NCBI GenBank assembly: GCA_048013815.1
Contig: CM106585.1
Coordinates: 22,382,001 to 22,446,000 of the forward strand
Direction of reading: 5' to 3'
Length of the DNA: 64,000 nt
Source: Setoptus koraiensis
Lineage: Eukaryota; Animalia; Arthropoda
Shown: positions 10,218-56,485 of the stretch, in pieces
Position numbering within the stretch: position 1 is the stretch's first letter
How the letters are laid out: each line of letters begins with the position of its first letter
The notes under the pieces: model-generated
The model's database searches: none
What the model was told of the DNA's origin: nothing
The model's input: only the letters and a program-made list of their open reading frames with translations
Translations under genes and position numbers: made by a program

Positions 10218-10940
10218 ATGGCGTTGAGAGTCCAATTCGAGGGAAACAACGAAATCGGAGTGTTTGCCAAATTAACCAACACTTACTGTTTAGTTGCAAT
10301 TGGTGGAAGTGAGAATTTCTACAGCGTTTTCGAAAACGAACTAAGCGACGTTATTCCAGTTATTCATGCATCCATTGGCGGTTGTCGTATTGTGGGCAGG
10401 TTAACAGTGGGAAACAGGCATGGTTTATTGGTTCCAAATTCAACCACAGACCAGGAACTACAACATTTAAGAAATTCATTGCCAGACTCTGTCAAGATAC
10501 AACGCGTAGAAGAAAGACTTAGTGCCCTCGGTAACGTTGTTGCATGTAACGATTATGTTGGTATAATACATCCAGATTTGGATAGAGAGACTGAAGAGAT
10601 ACTAACAGATGTCCTCAAGATTGAAACATTCAGACAAACAATTGCAGACAACGTTCTAGTTGGTACCTATTGTTCATTGTCCAACGTAGGAGGCTTATTA
10701 CATCCCAGAACAGGTATAGAGCATCAAAATGAATTGGCCTCACTATTGCAGGTTCCTCTTGTGGCCGGCACTGTTAACAGGGGCTCCGATATTGTAGGAG
10801 CCGGTATTGTTGTCAATGATTATAATGCTTTTTGTGGATTCGATACGACATCCACCGAATTATCTCTCATAGAGAATATATTCAAGATTAATGAAACTGC
10901 ACAACATCATCAAATGTTCTTAATGGGCGGTAATAAATAG
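10218..10940 (+). CDS. eIF6: Eukaryotic translation initiation factor 6, intronless
   Basis: [59 protein letters not shown]; colinear with known eIF6. Confidence 0.97.
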
Positions 10941-12315: not shown

Positions 12316-15300
12316 TTAGTAATCGTCTTCGCTTCTGAAACCCAACAATATTCTCTCGAGTGGTGTCACTTTAGTTTCTTCTTGTATGTTATAATATTCG
12401 CGCAATTCTTCGGCCGGAAACCAGCACAAGCTAAAGTTTTCTGCTGCAATTAAGTTCACTTTAAATACGCGCAACATGGCCACCAACGGTATCCAAATTA
12501 TAGATGACACAACTAATACAAAGCCCAATACAAGACACCACGTTGGCCATGCCTTTGTCTCCAGTGACGCCTTACTCGCTATCCAGGCCTGATAATATAA
12601 TGAGGTATCTAATTCACTGAACGAAGATATCAGTATTATAATTAGAGTTATTGGTGCAAAATAACGCCAGCATAATAATATAAATAGCGGCGGCCTCTTG
12701 CCTGTCATTAGTTCGCAATCGTCGTTGAAACGTTTCAAGCCGTAGATATAGGACACTGCCAGTAACTCAAATAAAGCTATTACAACCAAAGGAAAATTTC
12801 CAGCGAATTGATCAAATATGGAAAACATATAATTGCCGCTGCCGTGTGCAAACATAATAAGTGATATACAGAACGACACTCCACAAATGAGGCCTATTTT
12901 CGTTGTTGATTGCCATTGGACGATTTGATTTAAGATGATGATTATCAATATAAGAGGAAAATTGAGAGGGATTAGAATTAATATGCTTGTCAGATTTGTT
13001 CACGACGACCAGCGTCGATAATCAATAATCGATTATCGATTATAAATTGCGAGCGCAGTAACGGACGGAGCAGGCAAATAAAGACAATTATATAATATAA
13101 ACTTGTTAGACTTACCCGTTGCGTACTCTCGATTCATCTTGGGCGACAACTTTAAATCCGCTATCGACGATAATAGACCCTCGAGAGTTCCAAATTGCGA
13201 ATCTAGACCAAGAGTCAACAACATTAAAAAGAACATAATCGACCATAGATTGGCGTTTGGAAATTGATTGATTGCCTCGGTGAAAACAATAAATGCTAAA
13301 CCTGTGCCAGAGGCGCTCCTATCTAGCTCCTTCTTCAGGTCACATTGGGGTAGATTTGGGATGGAATCAATAATGGATTTTAAATTTTCACTACTTATCA
13401 TGTTGCCTGCATCAACCATAAATTCAATATCACTATCACCATAGTCTATATCATCTTCTGTCCTTTGACTGTCCAATTGCTGATCTAAACTCTGGATGGC
13501 GTTTAAAGCATCATTTAAATCGTAGTAATCAGTGACGGAACCGTCATCTGTAATGCTCGGATGACTAAATACCGAACCATAATCAATAACTTTCAGATTG
13601 TGGTCTCCTAAATAAAAATCAATCATTAATTCTCTATTGGCAACACATTTATCGTACATAATGTTGGCTTTGAAGCCTGATTTGATGCAAACAATATATA
13701 ATGATAGTTTGATTTGAATTTGATTAGTTTGTGTTTCATCATGACCGATAGATTGTTTGCTGTTGGAGAGTGCCTAGTCATTTGTGGCGGATGAATACTC
13801 ACCTAACACGGCGAAAATCACCACGCCGGCATATAATGAGGTCAGACTGTTTATGATGGATACCGTTACGGCATCTTTATAACAATTATTGTTCACTGGG
13901 TTGTATGAGGACAACGCTATGAGTCCTCCGAAACCCAAACCTAGCGAGTAAAACACTTGAGCAGCCGACTGAAGCCAAACATGAGGATCGGCCAGTTTCG
14001 ACCACTGACTCGGCGTTTTTCAAACAGATAAATGAATGATGAGGAGAGATAGATAAATGATTGAGAGAGATAAATAAATGATCAAGAGAGAAAGGGAAAC
14101 GTTGCAGAACTCTATCGCTATAATTGAGAGCTGAACTTTAATTTTGGGAAGTAATTGTGTCTGTGGGGAGGGAAAAGATGCTGTCATTTTGACAGTGGGT
14201 GACGACTTACGTTGGGCGCAAACAAATGATAAACTCCGTCGGACATTCCATCAAGCGACATGGCTTTTACAAAAAAAATTGTCAATATCACATAGGGAAA
14301 AGTTGACGTAATGTATACTATTTTCTTGGCAGACGACAGGCCCTTAACGAGACATATATAGCTTGTGAACCACGATATTGCCAGACATAGTGCCATGTGA
14401 TAATTGAGGCCGGTCCATCGTTCTACGTCATCCGATGTGTCTAATGTTTCACGATACCAGTAATACTGAGTGGGGCTACTATTCTACACGGCGCACATAA
14501 ACAACATGATTGTTTTGGTTTTATTGAGACAGACGGATAATAATAATGTATTGCTGTTAGTACAAAGGCCAACATATCACCAGACATGTAATAAAGTGTG
14601 TATGTAATGAAAATGGTCACTCCGGGTCACGAACAAAGCCATCACGAACGTGCCCACTAAGCAGTGGGTTATCCGGGCTTAAATCTGGCTTTGTGGCACG
14701 AAGGGAACGAAGGAAAAATTTCGGCGCACAGAGCCAAAAAGACTGAACGTTTCTGCCCTGATGAGCCCAAATGATCGAGACCTTATTTATTTTGCCGATG
14801 AGCGACACCGTACCGCTGGTATATCTGATGTGCAAATCGGGCACATGATCAATTGAGAGAGCCCCAAAAACTGGATGAGATTGTTACACACAAATCGCAG
14901 GAGGTTTTTGGGCCTCGCTGCCGAAGGTAACAGGACCGAAAAAGAGGCGCTCTGTGCGCTTGTTACAGAAATTTAGCGAGCTAAATATCCGGCGTATCGT
15001 GCACACAACGGGTTAAATTGATCAACCGATTCATCGATCAGGCGATTTGTTTCTGTGGGGGCAATTCTGTTATTAAGATAACTTGCTCGGCGCGATTATA
15101 TTGATCCCCTAGTTAGAGGTTGTCGCTGTGTTTCTCCTTGCCGATGACACTTTCAGAGGGGTTCGCCTCATCAGAATGGCTCGTATCTATCGACTGATAC
15201 GAGTGGTTAACTACGAGCACGAGCGCTTAGACGTAAAAACATGTCAGAAAGAAACGAAATGAGACAGCACGATACCGACACCGAAAGCGATGCGGAAAAT

Positions 15301-42164: not shown

Positions 42165-43371
42165 CTTATGCAACACAACACAACACAACAATCTTTTATT
42201 TTAATGCGGCACAATCAACAATATCCTAGTGACACAATAACATTTAGTAATTATAATTGTTATTGTTGTAGCCGATTATTCGTAGAGTGCCTATTAGGCC
42301 AACAAACTAGTCGCCGGCAGAGGCCAGTTACGAGACAGTTAGCCAGTGTTCGGCAACGGGCGTCAGCAAGCGGTCTAATTATAGTATAGAGTGGGCAGTA
42401 TATAGTATGGGCTTATCGGGCGATCATTCAACAACAATTAGCAACAACAAACACTGTCACAGGGAACAGTTGCAGTCGGTGTAGCGGTTCGCATTGGCTC
42501 GCCTAATTATAGACTGATACACAACACAATCAAGTGACAGTTGGCGCCAAAAAGAAGAACATTAACAAATGGTTGTCACACAACACAGTTATGACATAAC
42601 TGTTTGTGTGTTCATTCATTCAGACAACTTGTTGTCTGGCGTGTGAAAAATTGAAAATTAACATGCATACTCTCGAGCGAGCTTGCCAGCTTGTCAGCCG
42701 TTAGCTCGGCTCGGATATCTTGTGTGTGTGCTGTCGGGAGCGCAACAATGAGCATCTATCATGCAACCGAATGTTGTTGCGTCACAGCACTTCCACTTTT
42801 CTCACGATCATCGTACACACTGTAGAGTCTACAGCTCTCTCTATAGCCCAGCCTCGACAATTCGCAGGTAATATTAGTAATACATACATATGTACAGGTA
42901 GTAGAAGACTGTATTAGCGTGGCGCAAGAGAGCCAGTTCATTTAATTATAACAACCTCAGAGATACATCAAGCGAGGTGTTTGTTGTGCAATCATATTGT
43001 TCACTGATCTATTGTTATTCGGAAGTAGTTTAGTTTTGGTGCGCGAACACACCAGCAAACACATCAATCAGCAAGATAGTTCCTGTTGACAGTAGCGGAG
43101 ACAATAAATTAAAAAATATCTACCTCAGCTAGTATCCGTTACACGCAAAACACATACAGATATATCATTGTGTGACATTCGATTGGCACTTTGCTGCTAT
43201 TATTGCTGTTTACATAAAACAAACTCTCTGCTGTCGTATGTCTATTGAGCCATCTGACAGTTGGCCAGGATAATAACAATAGTGATTGCTGTCGTTGCCG
43301 ATAGGATGTCAGTTACACTTACACTATCAAGTCTGTACACAAGCGCGATCTGTTTGTAAATGGTCGCTTGC

Positions 43372-46300
43372 TCAACGCAACAATGTCTGACTCATTTGCT
43401 CATTCCAGAAATTAACTAGTCTGTCCTCGCGATTCTGACAAAATTCTCTGAAATTTTTGTATAATGCAACGGCGAAACCCTCGTCTTGAGTGCTAGCCGA
43501 ACGCCAACGCTTCGTCAGCATATAATTCCACGACCATAGATAGCCTATCTTGGAATCGGCTTTAGTGCGATCCTCCGTCTGTTTAACGCCACTGAAATGC
43601 CTAGTTATATACTCTTCGTGGGGACTACAGATGGGCTCAGATAGTTCCAATTTGAGCATAAAGGTCCTCTTTCTAGTTGGCGACATTATATGGGGACACT
43701 TAATGCTATCAATGTTTGGCAACATAACAAACACAAAGCCTGATATGTGCACAAATTGGCGCTGAATGTCTGTAGCAGTTGAATCGTGAAAGGGTATAAA
43801 TCCGAATCTAGCCAATATGCGCTCTTGCAAATAGGCAACTAGATCGTCATTCATAAAGGGCCTGTCAGGTATTTTGTCTATGCCTAAGCCTATGAAAATT
43901 GGACAACGCAACGGGTCCGCTTTGCCACTGAATGGCAACGCAAATGGCTCCCATGGTATAGGCACAATGTGAACATTTGAATTGCCTGCCTTCCTAGACC
44001 AACCTTGCACCATTTCGGCAATGCCGGCCCCACTGGCAACCATCCATTTGATGACTAACTCGAACGCTTGCTCTGGATCGTAGAAGCTGTGATATTTCAC
44101 ATGCACCCATTCGGCGCGCTTATCATCGCGCAACGACGAATCTATATCGATGTTGATAGATTTGAATTTAAATTCGCGTGTCTCAAAATTATAACTAGAA
44201 TCGTTAATAATTTGATTTGTTGTTGCCATCGATTGTGAGGCCGCCGCCATTGCCTTGGGAAGCGAAGGCATGCTCTTGGTTGCTATCTTTGATGCCGCTG
44301 TTGTTGTTGTTGTTGTTGTTGCGTGTCTTATTGGCACTGGTGCCAGTTTAGTTTCTGGCGCTCGATCCGACACGCTTGCCGCCGCCGCAGCTACGGCGTT
44401 CGTCAAATCGACGAACGGATTATCCGCACTTGCACCAGTCACCAGTGGCGGTGTTGTTTCGGTCAATGTCGTAGACGTTATTGTTGTTGTCGCGGCTCTT
44501 CTCGTTGCTCCAATTGTCGTTTCAGAGGATTCATTGCCGGAGTTTGTTGGCTCCGTCGCAGCTGTAGCCACAGCCGACCCGGAGGCCGACTCTTTGGACG
44601 ATTCTGAGCTAGTGTCTGGTCGTTGTTGTTGTTGTTGTTGTTGACTGTTGTGCAATTGCAGTAACTCCACCTCAAACCAATCCTTCAGTGAGCTGTCATC
44701 GTCTTGGGTGCTGGTCGGGGTGCTGTTACGATTTATGGTTGTTCTTCGTGTTCTGTTGATTATTTCGACAAATTTTATGAAACTTTGCACCAGCGAATTG
44801 CGCTCCTCTTCGCTGTAGTCGTCGTGACAATCGTACCAGCCGTCGTGGCCCTCAAAGCGCGACTTTCGCAATTGAGATCTGCTAGGCAATATGAGAATTC
44901 TCAAACGCCAAAACTTTAAGCTACTTTTCAATTCGTAGAATTCACTTTCGCCCCGTGTGCAAATGTAATTATCTAGATAATTCCAATTGTAATTCTCTAG
45001 TTTTTCACTAGTGAAATCCACCCATGACACGCCATAGTTCTCGTGAAATGGGGCACGAAATCTATAACAATAGTTGATCTTGTTTGTTGGATACGGATGC
45101 CTGGGCCGATATTGTGTCACTGTTATGGACGAACCCTCTAGAGTTAATCTGTGAAATATTCTACCAATGCTCATGGTGTAATCGGTGCGCTCAAATTGTT
45201 CGTCGAAGTTCTTAACCAACGGATTGCCATTATTCAAATAGCTGATGCTTCTTTGTTGCAACTCAGACGACTTCTGTCTGGGCAACAGTATAATCTGGAA
45301 GCCCTTTTGAAGCCGCTGACACACCAGCTCTCTGTAAACCTCAATAAGATTATACTTGGAATGTATACATTCAGGTAACAGAGTGTAGGCGCTCATGACG
45401 TAATCATTTTGTAGACTGGTTTTGCTTGGAAAGAAATCAGTTGTTAATGGCAAACAAGCGGGCATGGTCAACGATTTCCAATCAACGCCCGTCGTGATGG
45501 CGGGCGTCCATTCTTGCTCTCCGCTAGCACACCAAGCAAACCTAATAGTGTCATTAGATACCAATGTACTCTTGTCATGCACAGGTGTTGTTTGTATGCT
45601 GCCATTACCAGCGCCAGTGGCCCTGCTCGACACATTTGCGCCGGCCCCAGCTTGACCAGTGGACGAACCGCCGCCAGTTGTATTGTTGCTGTTTGCAACA
45701 TTATTGACAATCATCTTGCCAGTGTGATCTTGGCCCCCAGCTGAGCCGCTGCCAGCTCCAGCCTTTAGGCCGGCTCGTGATCGTGAGGCGGCCGTTGACG
45801 AGGAGGTCACAATCATGTTTGTGCTATTTCTTATACTACCAGAACGCATTTTAGTGTGACTGGGCCCAATGAGGTTCCCACCAACAACTGGCTTATCATT
45901 GGCCGGATTCAGCCATGGATGGTCCTTTAATTGTAACAATGTACTGTCCTCTTGATCGGAGGTGGTCGTTGGCGATAGCGCCAGAGCATTTGATGGCGCT
46001 CCAGAGATGTTTGCAACATTATCGTGCGGCACAGCTTGATAGTGATGCTGTTGCATAAATATACCCGTGGGCCCTTGAGGAAAAACGTGAGTCCATCTGC
46101 GCCTGTTAGGCGTCAGTTTTATGGTCATGTGCGATGGATCAAATGGATTTATCAGGGCTTTCGGCCTGGTCTGGGCCCTATTCATTCTGCTCGATTGAAC
46201 ACTGTAGCCGTGTATGGACAGATCGTCGGCTGACTCAGGTTTCATATGCAATTCAGGTAATGGGTTGTCCACTAGGGACATTTGGGTAAATGGCGACGAT

Positions 46301-48162
46301 ACTGACGACAGTCTAGATTGTGTGACGTTAACATTGTCGGACGATGTCTTGCTGCTGAGAACTTTTCTACTGTTTCCTGTCGTAGAGTGCATTGTTGAAT
46401 GTTCATCAGGACCCCATTGATTGTGGCCTCGATGGTATTCTTCTATGCTTTGAACATCGGAAGCTCTTCTTCTATTAAACTTGTCATACAATTGCGAATA
46501 CGGTCCTCCTTGACTCGCGGTGGAGCTGGTGAAATAGTTACTAAATGTCCTATTGGAATCAAGTGGTGTCATTATGGAACTTCTCTGTCGCGATGTAGGC
46601 TGCTGGCACTGGTAGTTTAACAATGAGTTTGTTTTAAACACTTGCGCATCATACTCGTCATAATCCACTAAATCCGGTATTGCAGTATGAGAACTGAGAA
46701 TTCTCTCATGATGTCTACCACCAATGTCATCTCTGATGTGCCCCAAATGGTCACCGGATTGCATATCATTACAATTATTTTCATTCAAATTTTTACAGCT
46801 TTTATCTTTGTTAGCCTGCAATCTTTTCTTATCATTTGGACAGCAATCTGTATTAGTGCTATGTATAGTTGGTAGCTTTATACGCGGAACAAAATTAGAG
46901 TAGTGAACTTGATTTGTTGTAGAGTAAAAACTCAGATTTATCCAATGTGGCATATTATAAACATCACAAGTTGTTATTTGATCGTTTTGATTAGTAGCTT
47001 TTGCGTTAAATCTAAGCAGTGGAACTGTGTGCAATGGTTGCTCCCCCAAACAAACAAGGTCGCTACCGATACCATTGTCTATGATCCTCTGTTTTGTCAG
47101 ATTAGTCATCTCGAAATCAACTTCGAAAACACCGACGCCAGGCGACACCACAACCGATAATTGACCGGTACGGTCAAAACTTCTATCAAAGTAATGTTTC
47201 TCAAATACATTCAGTGACATGTTGAGCACCTCGAGAAAATTTCCTTGTGATGCGCTCGAATTGTAAGCCCTCGGTATTTTGGTCCCATAGATCTCTTGAT
47301 GTCTGTCTATCACCTCCATTTGATACTGATTAAATAGTGATCTCAGGGTAGTCAATTTGACATTCCAATCATGTAAATCGAAGCGATCATTTTGAAAGGC
47401 AACTCTGTAACAGTCCTCGTAGAATCTGTTCTTGTTATCTTGTTGAAGACACTCGCGCATTTCCTTTGGAAATTCCTCTATGCTCTCAGCCTCATAAAAT
47501 GTTCTGGAAAACAAAACAATGGTTATATCGTGGCTGCATTCGTATAGTCGCCATTTTGCAAACAAATCTGACAGAAAACCATTGACTGCCTTCTCGAAAT
47601 ATAAATCACCGTTTATATCATAATCCCACATTTCTGAGCTCATCTGTATGAAGAGATACACCAAACTGGATGCTGATCGGAACACTATTTTAGTATCATC
47701 GTCGACATAACCGGATTCCATTTTCTCTCCTTGTGACCATATTTCCCAAATTTGACTGCGTATATTGGAATATTCAATCTTCTGTTTGAGGTAGACGCAT
47801 TTATTATTGAGATGATTGCGAAGTCCCCACATGTAACTTCTCGCTAGGTAGGCGTTGCTGAAACACATCTCTATAGAGTCAACAATAACGCTCTTTTTGT
47901 CCACAATATTGACTATGACATCAAAATAGGGCCTAAGTTTGAATTGATTGGCGATAGAATCTTTGATGCTGATGCTACCAGGATGGGCAAAGGATTCGGG
48001 CCATTTCCTCACTTGTAAGAGCAACCGACTTGTTGTGGAGCCTTCGGAGGGTTTAATTTGCACAACGTCACCAAGATTGAGTTCGGGATAGTCCTTTTGA
48101 TTGATAATAATGTCCTCCTCGCTGAAGGCCGGTTGATGTTTGTTCAATTTTAAAATGGGCAT
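43372..48162 (-). CDS. DEPDC5: GATOR1 subunit DEPDC5/Iml1, single-exon CDS, no DEP domain
   Basis: Continuous ORF (first ATG 48162; frame open from 48183). Motifs FIQMSSEMWDYDINGDLYFEKAVNGFL, FLEVLNMSLNVFEKHY, VVSPGVGVFEVD, GIGSDLVCLGEQPLHTVPL, PHWINLSFY, INPFDPS, RRRWTHVFP, VDWKSLTMPACLPLTTDFFP, YNWNYLDNYIC, AFELVIKWM, GYLWSWNYMLTKRWR. Confidence 0.96.
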   Translation of the reverse strand: MPILKLNKHQPAFSEEDIIINQKDYPELNLGDVVQIKPSEGSTTSRLLLQVRKWPESFAHPGSISIKDSIANQFKLRPYFDVIVNIVDKKSVIVDSIEMCFSNAYLARSYMWGLRNHLNNKCVYLKQKIEYSNIRSQIWEIWSQGEKMESGYVDDDTKIVFRSASSLVYLFIQMSSEMWDYDINGDLYFEKAVNGFLSDLFAKWRLYECSHDITIVLFSRTFYEAESIEEFPKEMRECLQQDNKNRFYEDCYRVAFQNDRFDLHDWNVKLTTLRSLFNQYQMEVIDRHQEIYGTKIPRAYNSSASQGNFLEVLNMSLNVFEKHYFDRSFDRTGQLSVVVSPGVGVFEVDFEMTNLTKQRIIDNGIGSDLVCLGEQPLHTVPLLRFNAKATNQNDQITTCDVYNMPHWINLSFYSTTNQVHYSNFVPRIKLPTIHSTNTDCCPNDKKRLQANKDKSCKNLNENNCNDMQSGDHLGHIRDDIGGRHHERILSSHTAIPDLVDYDEYDAQVFKTNSLLNYQCQQPTSRQRSSIMTPLDSNRTFSNYFTSSTASQGGPYSQLYDKFNRRRASDVQSIEEYHRGHNQWGPDEHSTMHSTTGNSRKVLSSKTSSDNVNVTQSRLSSVSSPFTQMSLVDNPLPELHMKPESADDLSIHGYSVQSSRMNRAQTRPKALINPFDPSHMTIKLTPNRRRWTHVFPQGPTGIFMQQHHYQAVPHDNVANISGAPSNALALSPTTTSDQEDSTLLQLKDHPWLNPANDKPVVGGNLIGPSHTKMRSGSIRNSTNMIVTSSSTAASRSRAGLKAGAGSGSAGGQDHTGKMIVNNVANSNNTTGGGSSTGQAGAGANVSSRATGAGNGSIQTTPVHDKSTLVSNDTIRFAWCASGEQEWTPAITTGVDWKSLTMPACLPLTTDFFPSKTSLQNDYVMSAYTLLPECIHSKYNLIEVYRELVCQRLQKGFQIILLPRQKSSELQQRSISYLNNGNPLVKNFDEQFERTDYTMSIGRIFHRLTLEGSSITVTQYRPRHPYPTNKINYCYRFRAPFHENYGVSWVDFTSEKLENYNWNYLDNYICTRGESEFYELKSSLKFWRLRILILPSRSQLRKSRFEGHDGWYDCHDDYSEEERNSLVQSFIKFVEIINRTRRTTINRNSTPTSTQDDDSSLKDWFEVELLQLHNSQQQQQQQRPDTSSESSKESASGSAVATAATEPTNSGNESSETTIGATRRAATTTITSTTLTETTPPLVTGASADNPFVDLTNAVAAAAASVSDRAPETKLAPVPIRHATTTTTTTAASKIATKSMPSLPKAMAAASQSMATTNQIINDSSYNFETREFKFKSINIDIDSSLRDDKRAEWVHVKYHSFYDPEQAFELVIKWMVASGAGIAEMVQGWSRKAGNSNVHIVPIPWEPFALPFSGKADPLRCPIFIGLGIDKIPDRPFMNDDLVAYLQERILARFGFIPFHDSTATDIQRQFVHISGFVFVMLPNIDSIKCPHIMSPTRKRTFMLKLELSEPICSPHEEYITRHFSGVKQTEDRTKADSKIGYLWSWNYMLTKRWRSASTQDEGFAVALYKNFREFCQNREDRLVNFWNEQMSQTLLR

Positions 48163-49663
48163 GATGGAAAGGTGCCTCGCCACGGATTGGCTTAGTCACT
48201 GATGAGTGGACGATTTATCACTGTTGATGAGGGCCAAATATAAGAGAAAAGTTGTAGGTTTTCGTGGGCACTCTCATGTGGAACATGTTGCATTTGTATA
48301 ATGAAAAGTTGGTCCAATGTGACTGGTGACCGGCTGAGTTTGAATGGGCAAAACTAACTTAGAACAACGACAATTTCGTCCATTTTGGTTTAGTTGTTTA
48401 CTAACAAATTGATTAGTGTCGGTGATGGGATAATATTTCGACGATCGAATGGTATAGTCGAATGTGTTTAGTATAAATCAATGCTAATAGCTGGAGTCCA
48501 CGGGTGAGGTGTTTACATTTTTACTGCTTGCAAACAACAACTGACATTTGTTTACATTATCACCGACAAAATAACTTCTGATCACAGCACATAGGGGGCG
48601 CGCAGAGCAACGAGAAAAGCACACATGCTCAGCACATCAACATCCATATGTAGCACAACTGGTGCCCTTGTTCGAGCGACTGATGAGCCTTCGCAGACAA
48701 CGAGGCGTCAATTTGTGCCAGTCAGTTGTCAGGCGATTCGTACAAAAGTAAACTATACATTTTATCAAAGGTTCGGCTCGTGGCAGCCTAGAGAGCCCGA
48801 GTTTCAGTGTGAATATTGAGGCACCTGTTGGAGACAGGCACCTCGATGATTGTACAGAATGCAGACAGCAGCAGCAGTGAGAAGAGGCGCATTTGTAACT
48901 GACCACGGAATTTATTCGGGAGGACAATTGTTCGAATGGACAGCGATGATTTGAATTTATAATGATGGTCAAATGTGATTAGAGATGGGCGTAGAGAGCG
49001 TGATTCACGTTTCCAGCGTCACGTAATGGCAATGTTTTTGCATATATTGTGGCCAGCAACACATACCACACACACACACTTCGCCCCTATAGCCTAACGC
49101 ACAAAGAATGTGTAGTGGTGGCGTTGTTATTATTACGTCATCCTAGCTTTGTCCCATGTCGCTGCTGCTGCTGCTCGTCGTTACAGTATTAGGCCCACCT
49201 TTTACTCTATCGAGCAACAATGCTGAGAGCGAGAGCAAGATGGAGGCCGGATAAATGGATGGATTTGCACCACAAAGAAACGACAATCGACGCGCATCGT
49301 ATGCGTATAGTGATTTTGCTGTGCCAGAACACTATAAACACTATGAGCACGCGAACATTGCAAGAATTAGAAGTTGCAGTATCTTGAATGAGAATCAGAG
49401 AAAGTTTCTTCTTAATATCGTTGGAGTGTGTGTGTCGAACATTTGTTGAGCGGTGCCGGCGGCAGCTGTTGCTTTTGGGCCGCTGTTAGAGGCGTCTCTT
49501 CCTGTTGATAGCTGCAACTTGGGGTCCATCATTTCAAAATCATAACAAAGAACTGCAACAGCAACTGCAACAACCCGTGTGCGTGTGCCTGTGATGCAGT
49601 TTCGTCCGTAGAGAAAAAGAATTCGGCAACAGCGATGGAGCAGAACAAACAGAATCGATTCAT

Positions 49664-54859: not shown

Positions 54860-56485
54860 TTAAATCAAATCAAATTGATACTGCTGATTGTTAGCATCAG
54901 AGCTAGCGAATTCGTACACGTTATCCGACGCTTTTGGACGAAGGCTCTCATCCTCGTTAGCGGGGTCGTCTGTAAAATAGTTGTCAATGATGCTATAAGC
55001 CAGCTTATAAATATCCTCATTCATGTGGTTTTGCAAATTTTCAATCTTGTCCAATCCTCCACATTTTTCAATCTGCTCGGCAATCTTATCGTATTTGGTA
55101 TCAGAAGATTTTAGAATATTATTGAGAGTATCTAAAGCTATGTGCAATGTATTTGTTTCCGTGATGCTGAGTAAATTGCATATGGGCTCTATTACATCCA
55201 GCTCAACTAAATATGCAATTTGTTCAGGTGAGCCGCTTATGGTCAGGTTATAAACTGTCCAGGCGGCCTCACGTTGCGTACTATAATCGCTTTTGTCCAA
55301 ATGTTCTATAACAATCGGAATGATATTTTCATCGATCACAGCTTGTATTTGATCGACATCGCCAGCTGTAATATTTGATAGAAACCACAATACTTCTTTG
55401 CTAATTTTATCCTTATTTGGCTGATTCATGTCCTTTCCAGCTAAAAGAAGACTCCTCACACGTGGTAATGCTCCAAGATCAATCACAACTTGAGTCTGTT
55501 CATCAGTGCCAGTCACAATGCTTCCAACGGCCCTAATGGCAGCCATCTGAAGCTTGAGTTCTTTGTGTGTCAGTAAGGGAGTCACTTTTGCAATAATACC
55601 AGAATCAATAATCATTTGAACTAGTTCAGGTCCCGATTCAGTGACATATGACAGAGCCCATGTGGTATCCATCAAAATACTTTGGTCATCACTATCAATG
55701 AGGTAACTCAAAGCTGGCAATAGCTGTTTGACAACTTCGATAGGCGGCGGCGGATCTTTGTTGCGGCACAAATTAACTATGACCCAAGTGACGTTGCGCA
55801 AGAAACTTATGTCCATCTGGGGGCTTATCAAACGTAGTAGTGAGGGCACAACACCGTGCTTTATAACTTCGTCACGAAGAACTGCTCCATCACCAACAAT
55901 GTTACCTAAAGCCCAAACAGCTTGCTCGCACACTTTGACATCTGGGGAACTCAACAATCTTATAAAAAGGGGCACTGCCCCCGAGTCATAAACAGATCTT
56001 GTTTGTTTCGATGATCCCGAGGCGATATTTGTGAGCACCCATGCTACTTCGAATTGTAATGTTGGACAGTCATCACGATTTAATAACTCTGTGAACCTAG
56101 GCACGAGGCCACTAGCTATAACTTCATCAATAGGGGGTGAGGGTTCTTGCGACAATATCTTGCGAACCTTTTGGGTATTATAAATGAGTGCATTCAGATC
56201 GTCGTTTTGTGTCAGAGCTCTGTAAGTCTCAGTAGTTATAACCTCTCCATTTTCATATTGAGCAATATTAGAATCAGGTGGACATGAATTCTCTGGTACC
56301 GGATTTTGGCTCTCATCGTCAATCATGCTGACAGTATTGGTGCCCTGTGGCACCGCTCTCCGCTTACTGAATACTTGATTATCACGTTTTTGCTTGCGCA
56401 GTTGAACTCCTTCCTCCTCTCTTCGGCGACGTAATTCCCTAGGATTCAATCCTGTATTCTTATACTTGGCTCGATGATCATCCAT
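54860..56485 (-). CDS. Kap-alpha3: Importin alpha, alpha3 (KPNA3/4) clade, intronless CDS
   Basis: IBB domain (ELRRRREEEGVQLRKQKR), ARM repeats (LQFEVAWVLTNIASG, EQAVWALGNIVGDG), clade-typical VNLCRNKDPPPP, KLAYSIIDNYF. AG acceptor 9 nt before the ATG suggests a 5'UTR intron. Confidence 0.94.
   Translation of the reverse strand: MDDHRAKYKNTGLNPRELRRRREEEGVQLRKQKRDNQVFSKRRAVPQGTNTVSMIDDESQNPVPENSCPPDSNIAQYENGEVITTETYRALTQNDDLNALIYNTQKVRKILSQEPSPPIDEVIASGLVPRFTELLNRDDCPTLQFEVAWVLTNIASGSSKQTRSVYDSGAVPLFIRLLSSPDVKVCEQAVWALGNIVGDGAVLRDEVIKHGVVPSLLRLISPQMDISFLRNVTWVIVNLCRNKDPPPPIEVVKQLLPALSYLIDSDDQSILMDTTWALSYVTESGPELVQMIIDSGIIAKVTPLLTHKELKLQMAAIRAVGSIVTGTDEQTQVVIDLGALPRVRSLLLAGKDMNQPNKDKISKEVLWFLSNITAGDVDQIQAVIDENIIPIVIEHLDKSDYSTQREAAWTVYNLTISGSPEQIAYLVELDVIEPICNLLSITETNTLHIALDTLNNILKSSDTKYDKIAEQIEKCGGLDKIENLQNHMNEDIYKLAYSIIDNYFTDDPANEDESLRPKASDNVYEFASSDANNQQYQFDLI

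Follow-up and report, generated by a model that had tools for sequence, protein, structure and literature searches.

DEPDC5 acts as a central brake on mTORC1 and is a major gene for focal epilepsy. The question raised by the locus described here is whether such a protein can keep working once its namesake domain, DEP, has been removed by evolution. The window (the whole 64-kb stretch of DNA that was analysed) carries a mite gene of the DEPDC5/Iml1 family in which the two ends of the usual DEP region lie almost side by side. It is very probable that this is a functional DEPDC5/Iml1 gene of an acariform mite, that the ancestor of its clade lost a linker together with DEP, and that the core GATOR1 role, as judged from conservation, has been kept.

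Gene and domain layout

By far the longest open reading frame (ORF) of the window is a single minus-strand frame of 1603 codons at 43372-48183. Its translation gives a complete, intron-free coding sequence on the minus strand (43375..48162) that begins with Met at 48162, is closed by a TGA stop at 43372-43374 and encodes a DEPDC5/Iml1 orthologue of 1596 amino acids (aa). In a phmmer search of solved structures this protein matches human DEPDC5 at E 1e-240 and yeast Iml1 at E 1e-57. The blocks aligned to human DEPDC5 are the N-terminal half, SHEN (query residues 889-1141) and the C-terminal domain or CTD (query residues 1333-1589), and no part of the mite protein aligns to the human DEP in that search.

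The individual domains, all on the minus strand, follow one another in the familiar order. The protein opens with the IML1_N double-psi beta-barrel (aa 2-86; 47905..48159; Pfam PF23013, E 1.8e-21) and continues with the vWA-like IML1/SABA domain (aa 97-385; 47008..47874; PF12257, E 8e-101), which covers the full profile, positions 1-286. In human GATOR1, SABA is the part that binds NPRL2. SHEN (aa 889-1141; 44740..45498) aligns with residues 738-999 of human DEPDC5 (phmmer against 6ces_D, E 1.3e-57). Its Tyr926 (45385-45387) aligns with human Tyr775, which Shen, in 2018, reportedly included in the RagA-binding 'critical strip' of SHEN. The tyrosine at this position (Y47 of the alignment) is invariant, being present in 43 of 43 aligned sequences.

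The C-terminal domain (aa 1333-1579; 43426..44166, minus strand; PF19418, E 4e-61) matches positions 63-297 only of the 298 in its profile, and its human counterpart comprises residues ~1351-1594. The first PF19418 element, WFEVEL, is kept as an island 165 aa upstream of the match. In an AF2 model of aa 880-1596, both SHEN and the CTD are confidently folded, and Foldseek matches this model to DEPDC5 in GATOR1, GATOR1-Rag and KICSTOR-GATOR1 structures at E ~1e-27. The mite protein is a DEP-less variant of the DEPDC5/Iml1 orthologue group and not a typical member.

The junction between SHEN and the post-DEP motif

The junction lies at 44662..44781 on the minus strand and has been characterized by alignment, by contigs and by dN/dS. 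Read in the direction of translation, it comprises the SHEN-end motif FIKFVEIINRTRR (aa 1128-1140; 44743-44781), a 19-aa connector (44686-44742) and the post-DEP motif KDWFEVEL (aa 1160-1167; 44662-44685), all taken from the minus-strand translation. The initial annotation of this locus had put the two motifs about 25 aa apart inside one ORF. The single continuous ORF is borne out, but the connector is shorter, at 19 aa.

Its companion statement, that the same motifs are parted in human DEPDC5 by a long linker and DEP, agrees with the alignments. The mite SHEN-end motif aligns with human FVRFVEGLNRIRR, whose last residue is R999, and human FQRKWFEVAF is found at ~1288-1297 (numbering corrected for an 18-residue tag on the aligned chain), preceded by the DEP block EILEAMK...FISAEVVHWLV...LITHASGE...GFYFYKIV. 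The aligned counterpart of FQRKWFEVAF in the mite Dinothrombium is FKREWFEVEL. Because the DEPDC5_CTD Pfam profile starts ~14 residues ahead of WFEVEL in Dinothrombium and Leptotrombidium, with the generic DEP match ending just before, the WFEVEL-type motif can be regarded as the first element of the C-terminal family. In the AF2 model of the query, KDWFEVEL has a pLDDT below 50.

A junction of this kind might also be created by a collapse or mis-join in the assembly. Short repeats flank it within the coding sequence at 44288-44328 and 44612-44652, both outside the junction itself, and Logan contigs of several runs break there, as such an artefact might lead one to expect. Logan contigs of four runs, which are assembled contigs and not raw reads, were aligned with positions 43300-48250 (4951 letters); no RNA run was found to contain the stretch. 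A 5397-nt contig of run X2 (depth 134) spans 44329-48250 with 0 differences. A contig of X5, a different run of what is likely the source sample, spans 44653-46956, and one of X3, which belongs to another study, spans 44653-44907. Contigs of three runs from three studies cross 44662-44781 in this way, with no gaps, insertions or joints reported. In addition, an orthologue of 89% identity on locus L001 has the same junction, and twenty more relatives are without DEP. The mis-join is almost certainly not the explanation. The DEP-less junction is real DNA, and the assembly collapse that the initial annotation had named as a refuting case does not apply.

Searches for a DEP domain

If DEP is absent from its usual place, it could still be present elsewhere in the ORF. 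PF00610 (DEP) gives no Pfam match in the mite protein even at E<=1. A DEPDC5-specific DEP HMM, trained on 21 arthropod DEPDC5 proteins and run without filters, matches all 99 of the other arthropod orthologues retrieved (P0022-P0120) at E 1e-40 to 7e-11, the weakest of these matches being to a partial sequence. The same model matches 0 of the 22 proteins that make up the query and its closest 21 relatives (P0001-P0021), with nothing at E<=10 in the query. It also finds no match in six-frame translations of the 64-kb window and of the relatives' loci L001-L003 (best E about 6). The initial annotation had named a DEP match elsewhere in the ORF as a refuting outcome, and these searches give none, either in the ORF or in the rest of the window.

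In the alignment, the DEP block is missing outright from the DEP-less clade. From the SHEN end to the CTD motif 'DID...R.EW', the DEP-bearing mites and the scorpion have 195-271 aa, as compared with 176-197 aa to 'DID' in the query and P0001 and 64-128 aa in P0002-P0021; spiders stand outside this comparison, as the regular expression found no CTD motif in them.

The space directly after KDWFEVEL is filled in the query by a lineage-specific low-complexity linker of 143 aa, recognized from its composition (aa 1168-1310; 44233..44661, minus strand). It includes a poly-Q tract that derives from a CAA repeat at ~44620-44652, and it is missing in P0002-P0021. DEP might persist within this stretch, diverged beyond recognition, and the generic PF00610 model is weak enough on true DEPDC5 DEP domains (26-41 bits; cut-off, 32.7) that such a case could escape it. 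However, the family-specific model with its filters off is silent here as well. The stretch consists of T, A, S, P, Q and G to 66%, has a dN/dS of 0.37 and many indels relative to the L001 orthologue, and is predicted to be disordered, with an AF2 pLDDT below 50. Moreover, the spacing from SHEN to the CTD motif goes down to 64 aa in relatives, into which a DEP fold of ~90 aa plus a spacer cannot fit. A hidden, diverged DEP is very unlikely.

The same weakness of the generic model has consequences for precomputed annotation. No precomputed PF00610 label is found in ants, Tetranychus, Polistes and many others, though the DEP block is present in them. Many DEP-bearing orthologues go unlabelled because the generic model scores them near its threshold. 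Precomputed Pfam labels were rejected as proof of DEP loss, since unlabelled ants and Tetranychus carry the block. Users of databases should be aware that DEP-bearing DEPDC5 orthologues can look DEP-less in such annotation.

Phylogenetic extent of the loss

The best 21 database matches to the mite protein are 52-89% identical to it, all are without DEP, and all come from raw public assemblies. They are followed by matches from Oppia, Leptotrombidium, Dinothrombium, Brevipalpus, Sarcoptes, Dermatophagoides, Tetranychus, Euroglyphus, a scorpion, spiders and insects. DEP is kept in oribatid, astigmatid, tetranychid and trombidiid mites, and in the spiders, the scorpion and the insects.

The DEP-less sequences, at least 22 in number, group as one clade in a maximum-likelihood tree (1365 columns, LG+G4), with an SH-aLRT of 100 and a stem of 0.95 substitutions per site. 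Within it, the query pairs with P0001, and the other 20 sequences form the sister group. The clade sits inside Acariformes (SH-aLRT 100), beside Parasitengona, Tetranychoidea and a group of Oppia plus Astigmata. A single ancestral loss of DEP, old and clade-wide, would be the simplest reading of this tree. The loss had been put forward as lineage-specific, and this is correct insofar as DEP is retained in other arachnids, six further mite lineages among them. It is, however, not private to the species, but extends to a clade of at least 22 sequences. The source is an acariform mite and probably an eriophyoid, an assignment that fits both the position in the tree and the lack of introns.

Selection and further changes in the protein

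The strength of selection was estimated against the 89%-identical orthologue on L001, at a dS of 0.79. Overall dN/dS is 0.063. It falls to 0.005 in the N-terminal domain plus SABA (aa 1-431), and is 0.029 in SHEN, 0.045 in the CTD and 0.069 across the junction (aa 1128-1170, 43 codons). Ratios of ~0.06 overall and 0.07 at the junction imply a functional gene. By this measure, the DEP-less DEPDC5 gene is functional and is under strong purifying selection in its N-terminal, SABA, SHEN and C-terminal parts as well as at the junction.

The DEP domain and the linker had been described as cleanly deleted, with the other domains intact. Both are indeed gone, and the rest of the protein is present and constrained. 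The deletion is nevertheless accompanied by further changes, namely the 143-aa insert and the loss of ~17 residues from a loop of SHEN. This second loss is the only clade-wide deletion of at least 8 columns besides that of the linker and DEP. The missing loop lies right after the conserved LLPE motif (45364-45378, aa 929-933) and adjoins Tyr926, the counterpart of human Tyr775.

At 0.95, the stem leading to the DEP-less sequences is also longer than the stems of other mites, which measure 0.28-0.59. Its length implies that the whole protein changed fast around the time of DEP loss. Taken together, the long stem and the second, small deletion in SHEN show that the protein was altered in several respects, and its function may have shifted instead of merely persisting.

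P0002-P0021 are without WFEVEL and conserve instead a motif, 'SPTRLNVxI', that is located 25-60 aa ahead of the CTD 'DID' motif. SPTRLNVxI and WFEVEL may be the same strand in diverged form. In the AF2 model of P0002, SPTRLNVxI has a pLDDT of only ~55 and forms a two-residue bridge, and the local alignment to PF19418 in this protein begins near profile position 36.

Introns, neighbouring genes and the possibility of a second copy

The absence of introns from a gene of this size calls for comparison with other genes of the window. Importin-alpha (54860-56485, minus strand; complete, 541 aa, with IBB, Arm repeats and Arm_3) and eIF6 (10218-10940, plus strand; complete, 240 aa) are each encoded in a single ORF. 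In contrast, a gene for an SLC6 transporter (12316-13659) is split into exons. As importin-alpha and eIF6 are also single ORFs, the intron-free state seems to be normal in this genome. In eriophyoids, 75-84% of genes are reported to be intron-free, the introns having been lost on the stem of the group (PMC7738191; preprint 10.64898/2026.08.24.746826). Two of the relatives, P0010 and P0015, reside on genomic contigs together with neighbouring genes and are likewise intron-free.

The DEPDC5 genes of relatives are flanked by tetraspanin and synaphin/complexin on L002 and by a carnitine acyltransferase on L003. These neighbours differ from those in the window, so that synteny around DEPDC5 is apparently not conserved.

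An intron-free, DEP-less gene could also arise as a retrocopy or as a second paralogue. In that case, DEP would be found elsewhere in the genome, either in a DEPDC5 that still has the domain or in a separate gene that provides it in trans. The lack of introns and the long stem branch are what such a history would leave behind. The protein collection also draws its full-length proteins from raw contigs chiefly where genes lack introns, such that an intron-bearing parent copy could be missed, and the searches covered 64 kb of this genome plus some 36 kb from relatives. Against this, the single-ORF state of importin-alpha and eIF6 and the figures reported for eriophyoid genomes make missing introns unexceptional. 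Furthermore, 22 of 22 clade members are both intron-free and DEP-less, some of them on genomic contigs with neighbours, and the nearest DEP-bearing sequence among the best 120 matches is that of Oppia, at 46% identity. A dN/dS of 0.06 is as expected for the sole essential copy. A second copy that retains DEP is therefore improbable, and an orthologue that has itself lost DEP is the preferred reading.

Comparison with known systems

Human DEPDC5 (PDB 6CES, 7T3A-C, 9O5A and 9V0J) resembles the mite protein in the order of its N-terminal, SABA, SHEN and C-terminal parts. The two differ in what lies between R999 and FQRKWFEVAF, which in the human protein is a linker of ~170 residues plus DEP (about 1172-1260) and in the mite protein is 19 residues. 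They differ also in the 143-aa low-complexity insert after the WFEV motif, which is a feature of the mite.

The Iml1 proteins of other mites and arachnids (Dinothrombium P0026, Leptotrombidium P0023, Tetranychus P0029, Oppia P0022, spiders and the scorpion) are orthologues with 45-51% identity to the mite protein; that of Sarcoptes (P0028) reaches 62%, over a shorter stretch. They share the motifs on either side of the junction, INRIRR at the SHEN end and an EWFEVEL-type motif, which reads WFEVEL in Leptotrombidium and Dinothrombium and WFEVKL in Tetranychus. Unlike the mite protein, they keep a linker and the DEP block (TFISAEAV..W...LICHASGD...GFYLYYI) between these motifs, and the DEP HMM finds the block at E 1e-30 to 1e-40.

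Yeast Iml1/Sea1 of SEACIT (PDB 8ADL), a homologue by its match at E 1e-57, has kept DEP too. In the map of the SEA complex, this DEP is unresolved and makes no visible contact, while the C-terminal part of the protein as a whole (SHEN, DEP and CTD) is flexible and is required for vacuolar recruitment; the same study reports no DEP-only deletion of Iml1/Sea1 (PMC9646525). An unresolved, contact-free DEP fits the idea of a peripheral module. A review names DEP among the domains of DEPDC5 and gives it no role in GATOR1 (PMC8534245). A literature search, to which the reports of KICSTOR-GATOR1 structures were external, returned no test of the DEPDC5 DEP alone and no description of a DEP-less Iml1.

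A proposed role for DEP

We propose that the clade ancestor lost ~180 residues, comprising the disordered linker that follows SHEN and the entire DEP domain, and that SHEN now joins the first conserved C-terminal element by way of 19 residues. Judging from conservation, the mite protein would still assemble with NPRL2/NPRL3 through SABA. It would likewise still meet RagA through SHEN and restrain TORC1. DEP would represent an accessory module for a regulatory or localizing contact, situated outside the core GAP machine, and would have become dispensable in this lineage, perhaps together with its binding partner. DEP is probably not needed for the core job of the protein in this clade and would, as far as conservation goes, be dispensable for Rag/TORC1 inhibition.

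A narrower proposal is that DEP docks one particular partner or input, and that the clade lost both together. Candidates would be KICSTOR or GATOR2, a handle for a ubiquitin ligase, or a contact with a membrane or receptor. This version is rather unlikely. If it is true, comparing the gene repertoires of mites with and without DEP would name the function of DEP.

The loss of an accessory DEP from a working DEPDC5 remains the preferred reading, and it has several uses. The protein is well known and its DEP-less form is new, which makes the clade a natural deletion experiment on the namesake domain of DEPDC5. The mite junction gives natural boundaries for a clean deletion construct in which the SHEN end is joined to the WFEV strand. 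The loss also invites a comparative search for anything that disappeared together with DEP. An old and large animal clade that holds the rest of DEPDC5 under tight constraint without DEP is evidence that the domain lies outside the core GAP machine.
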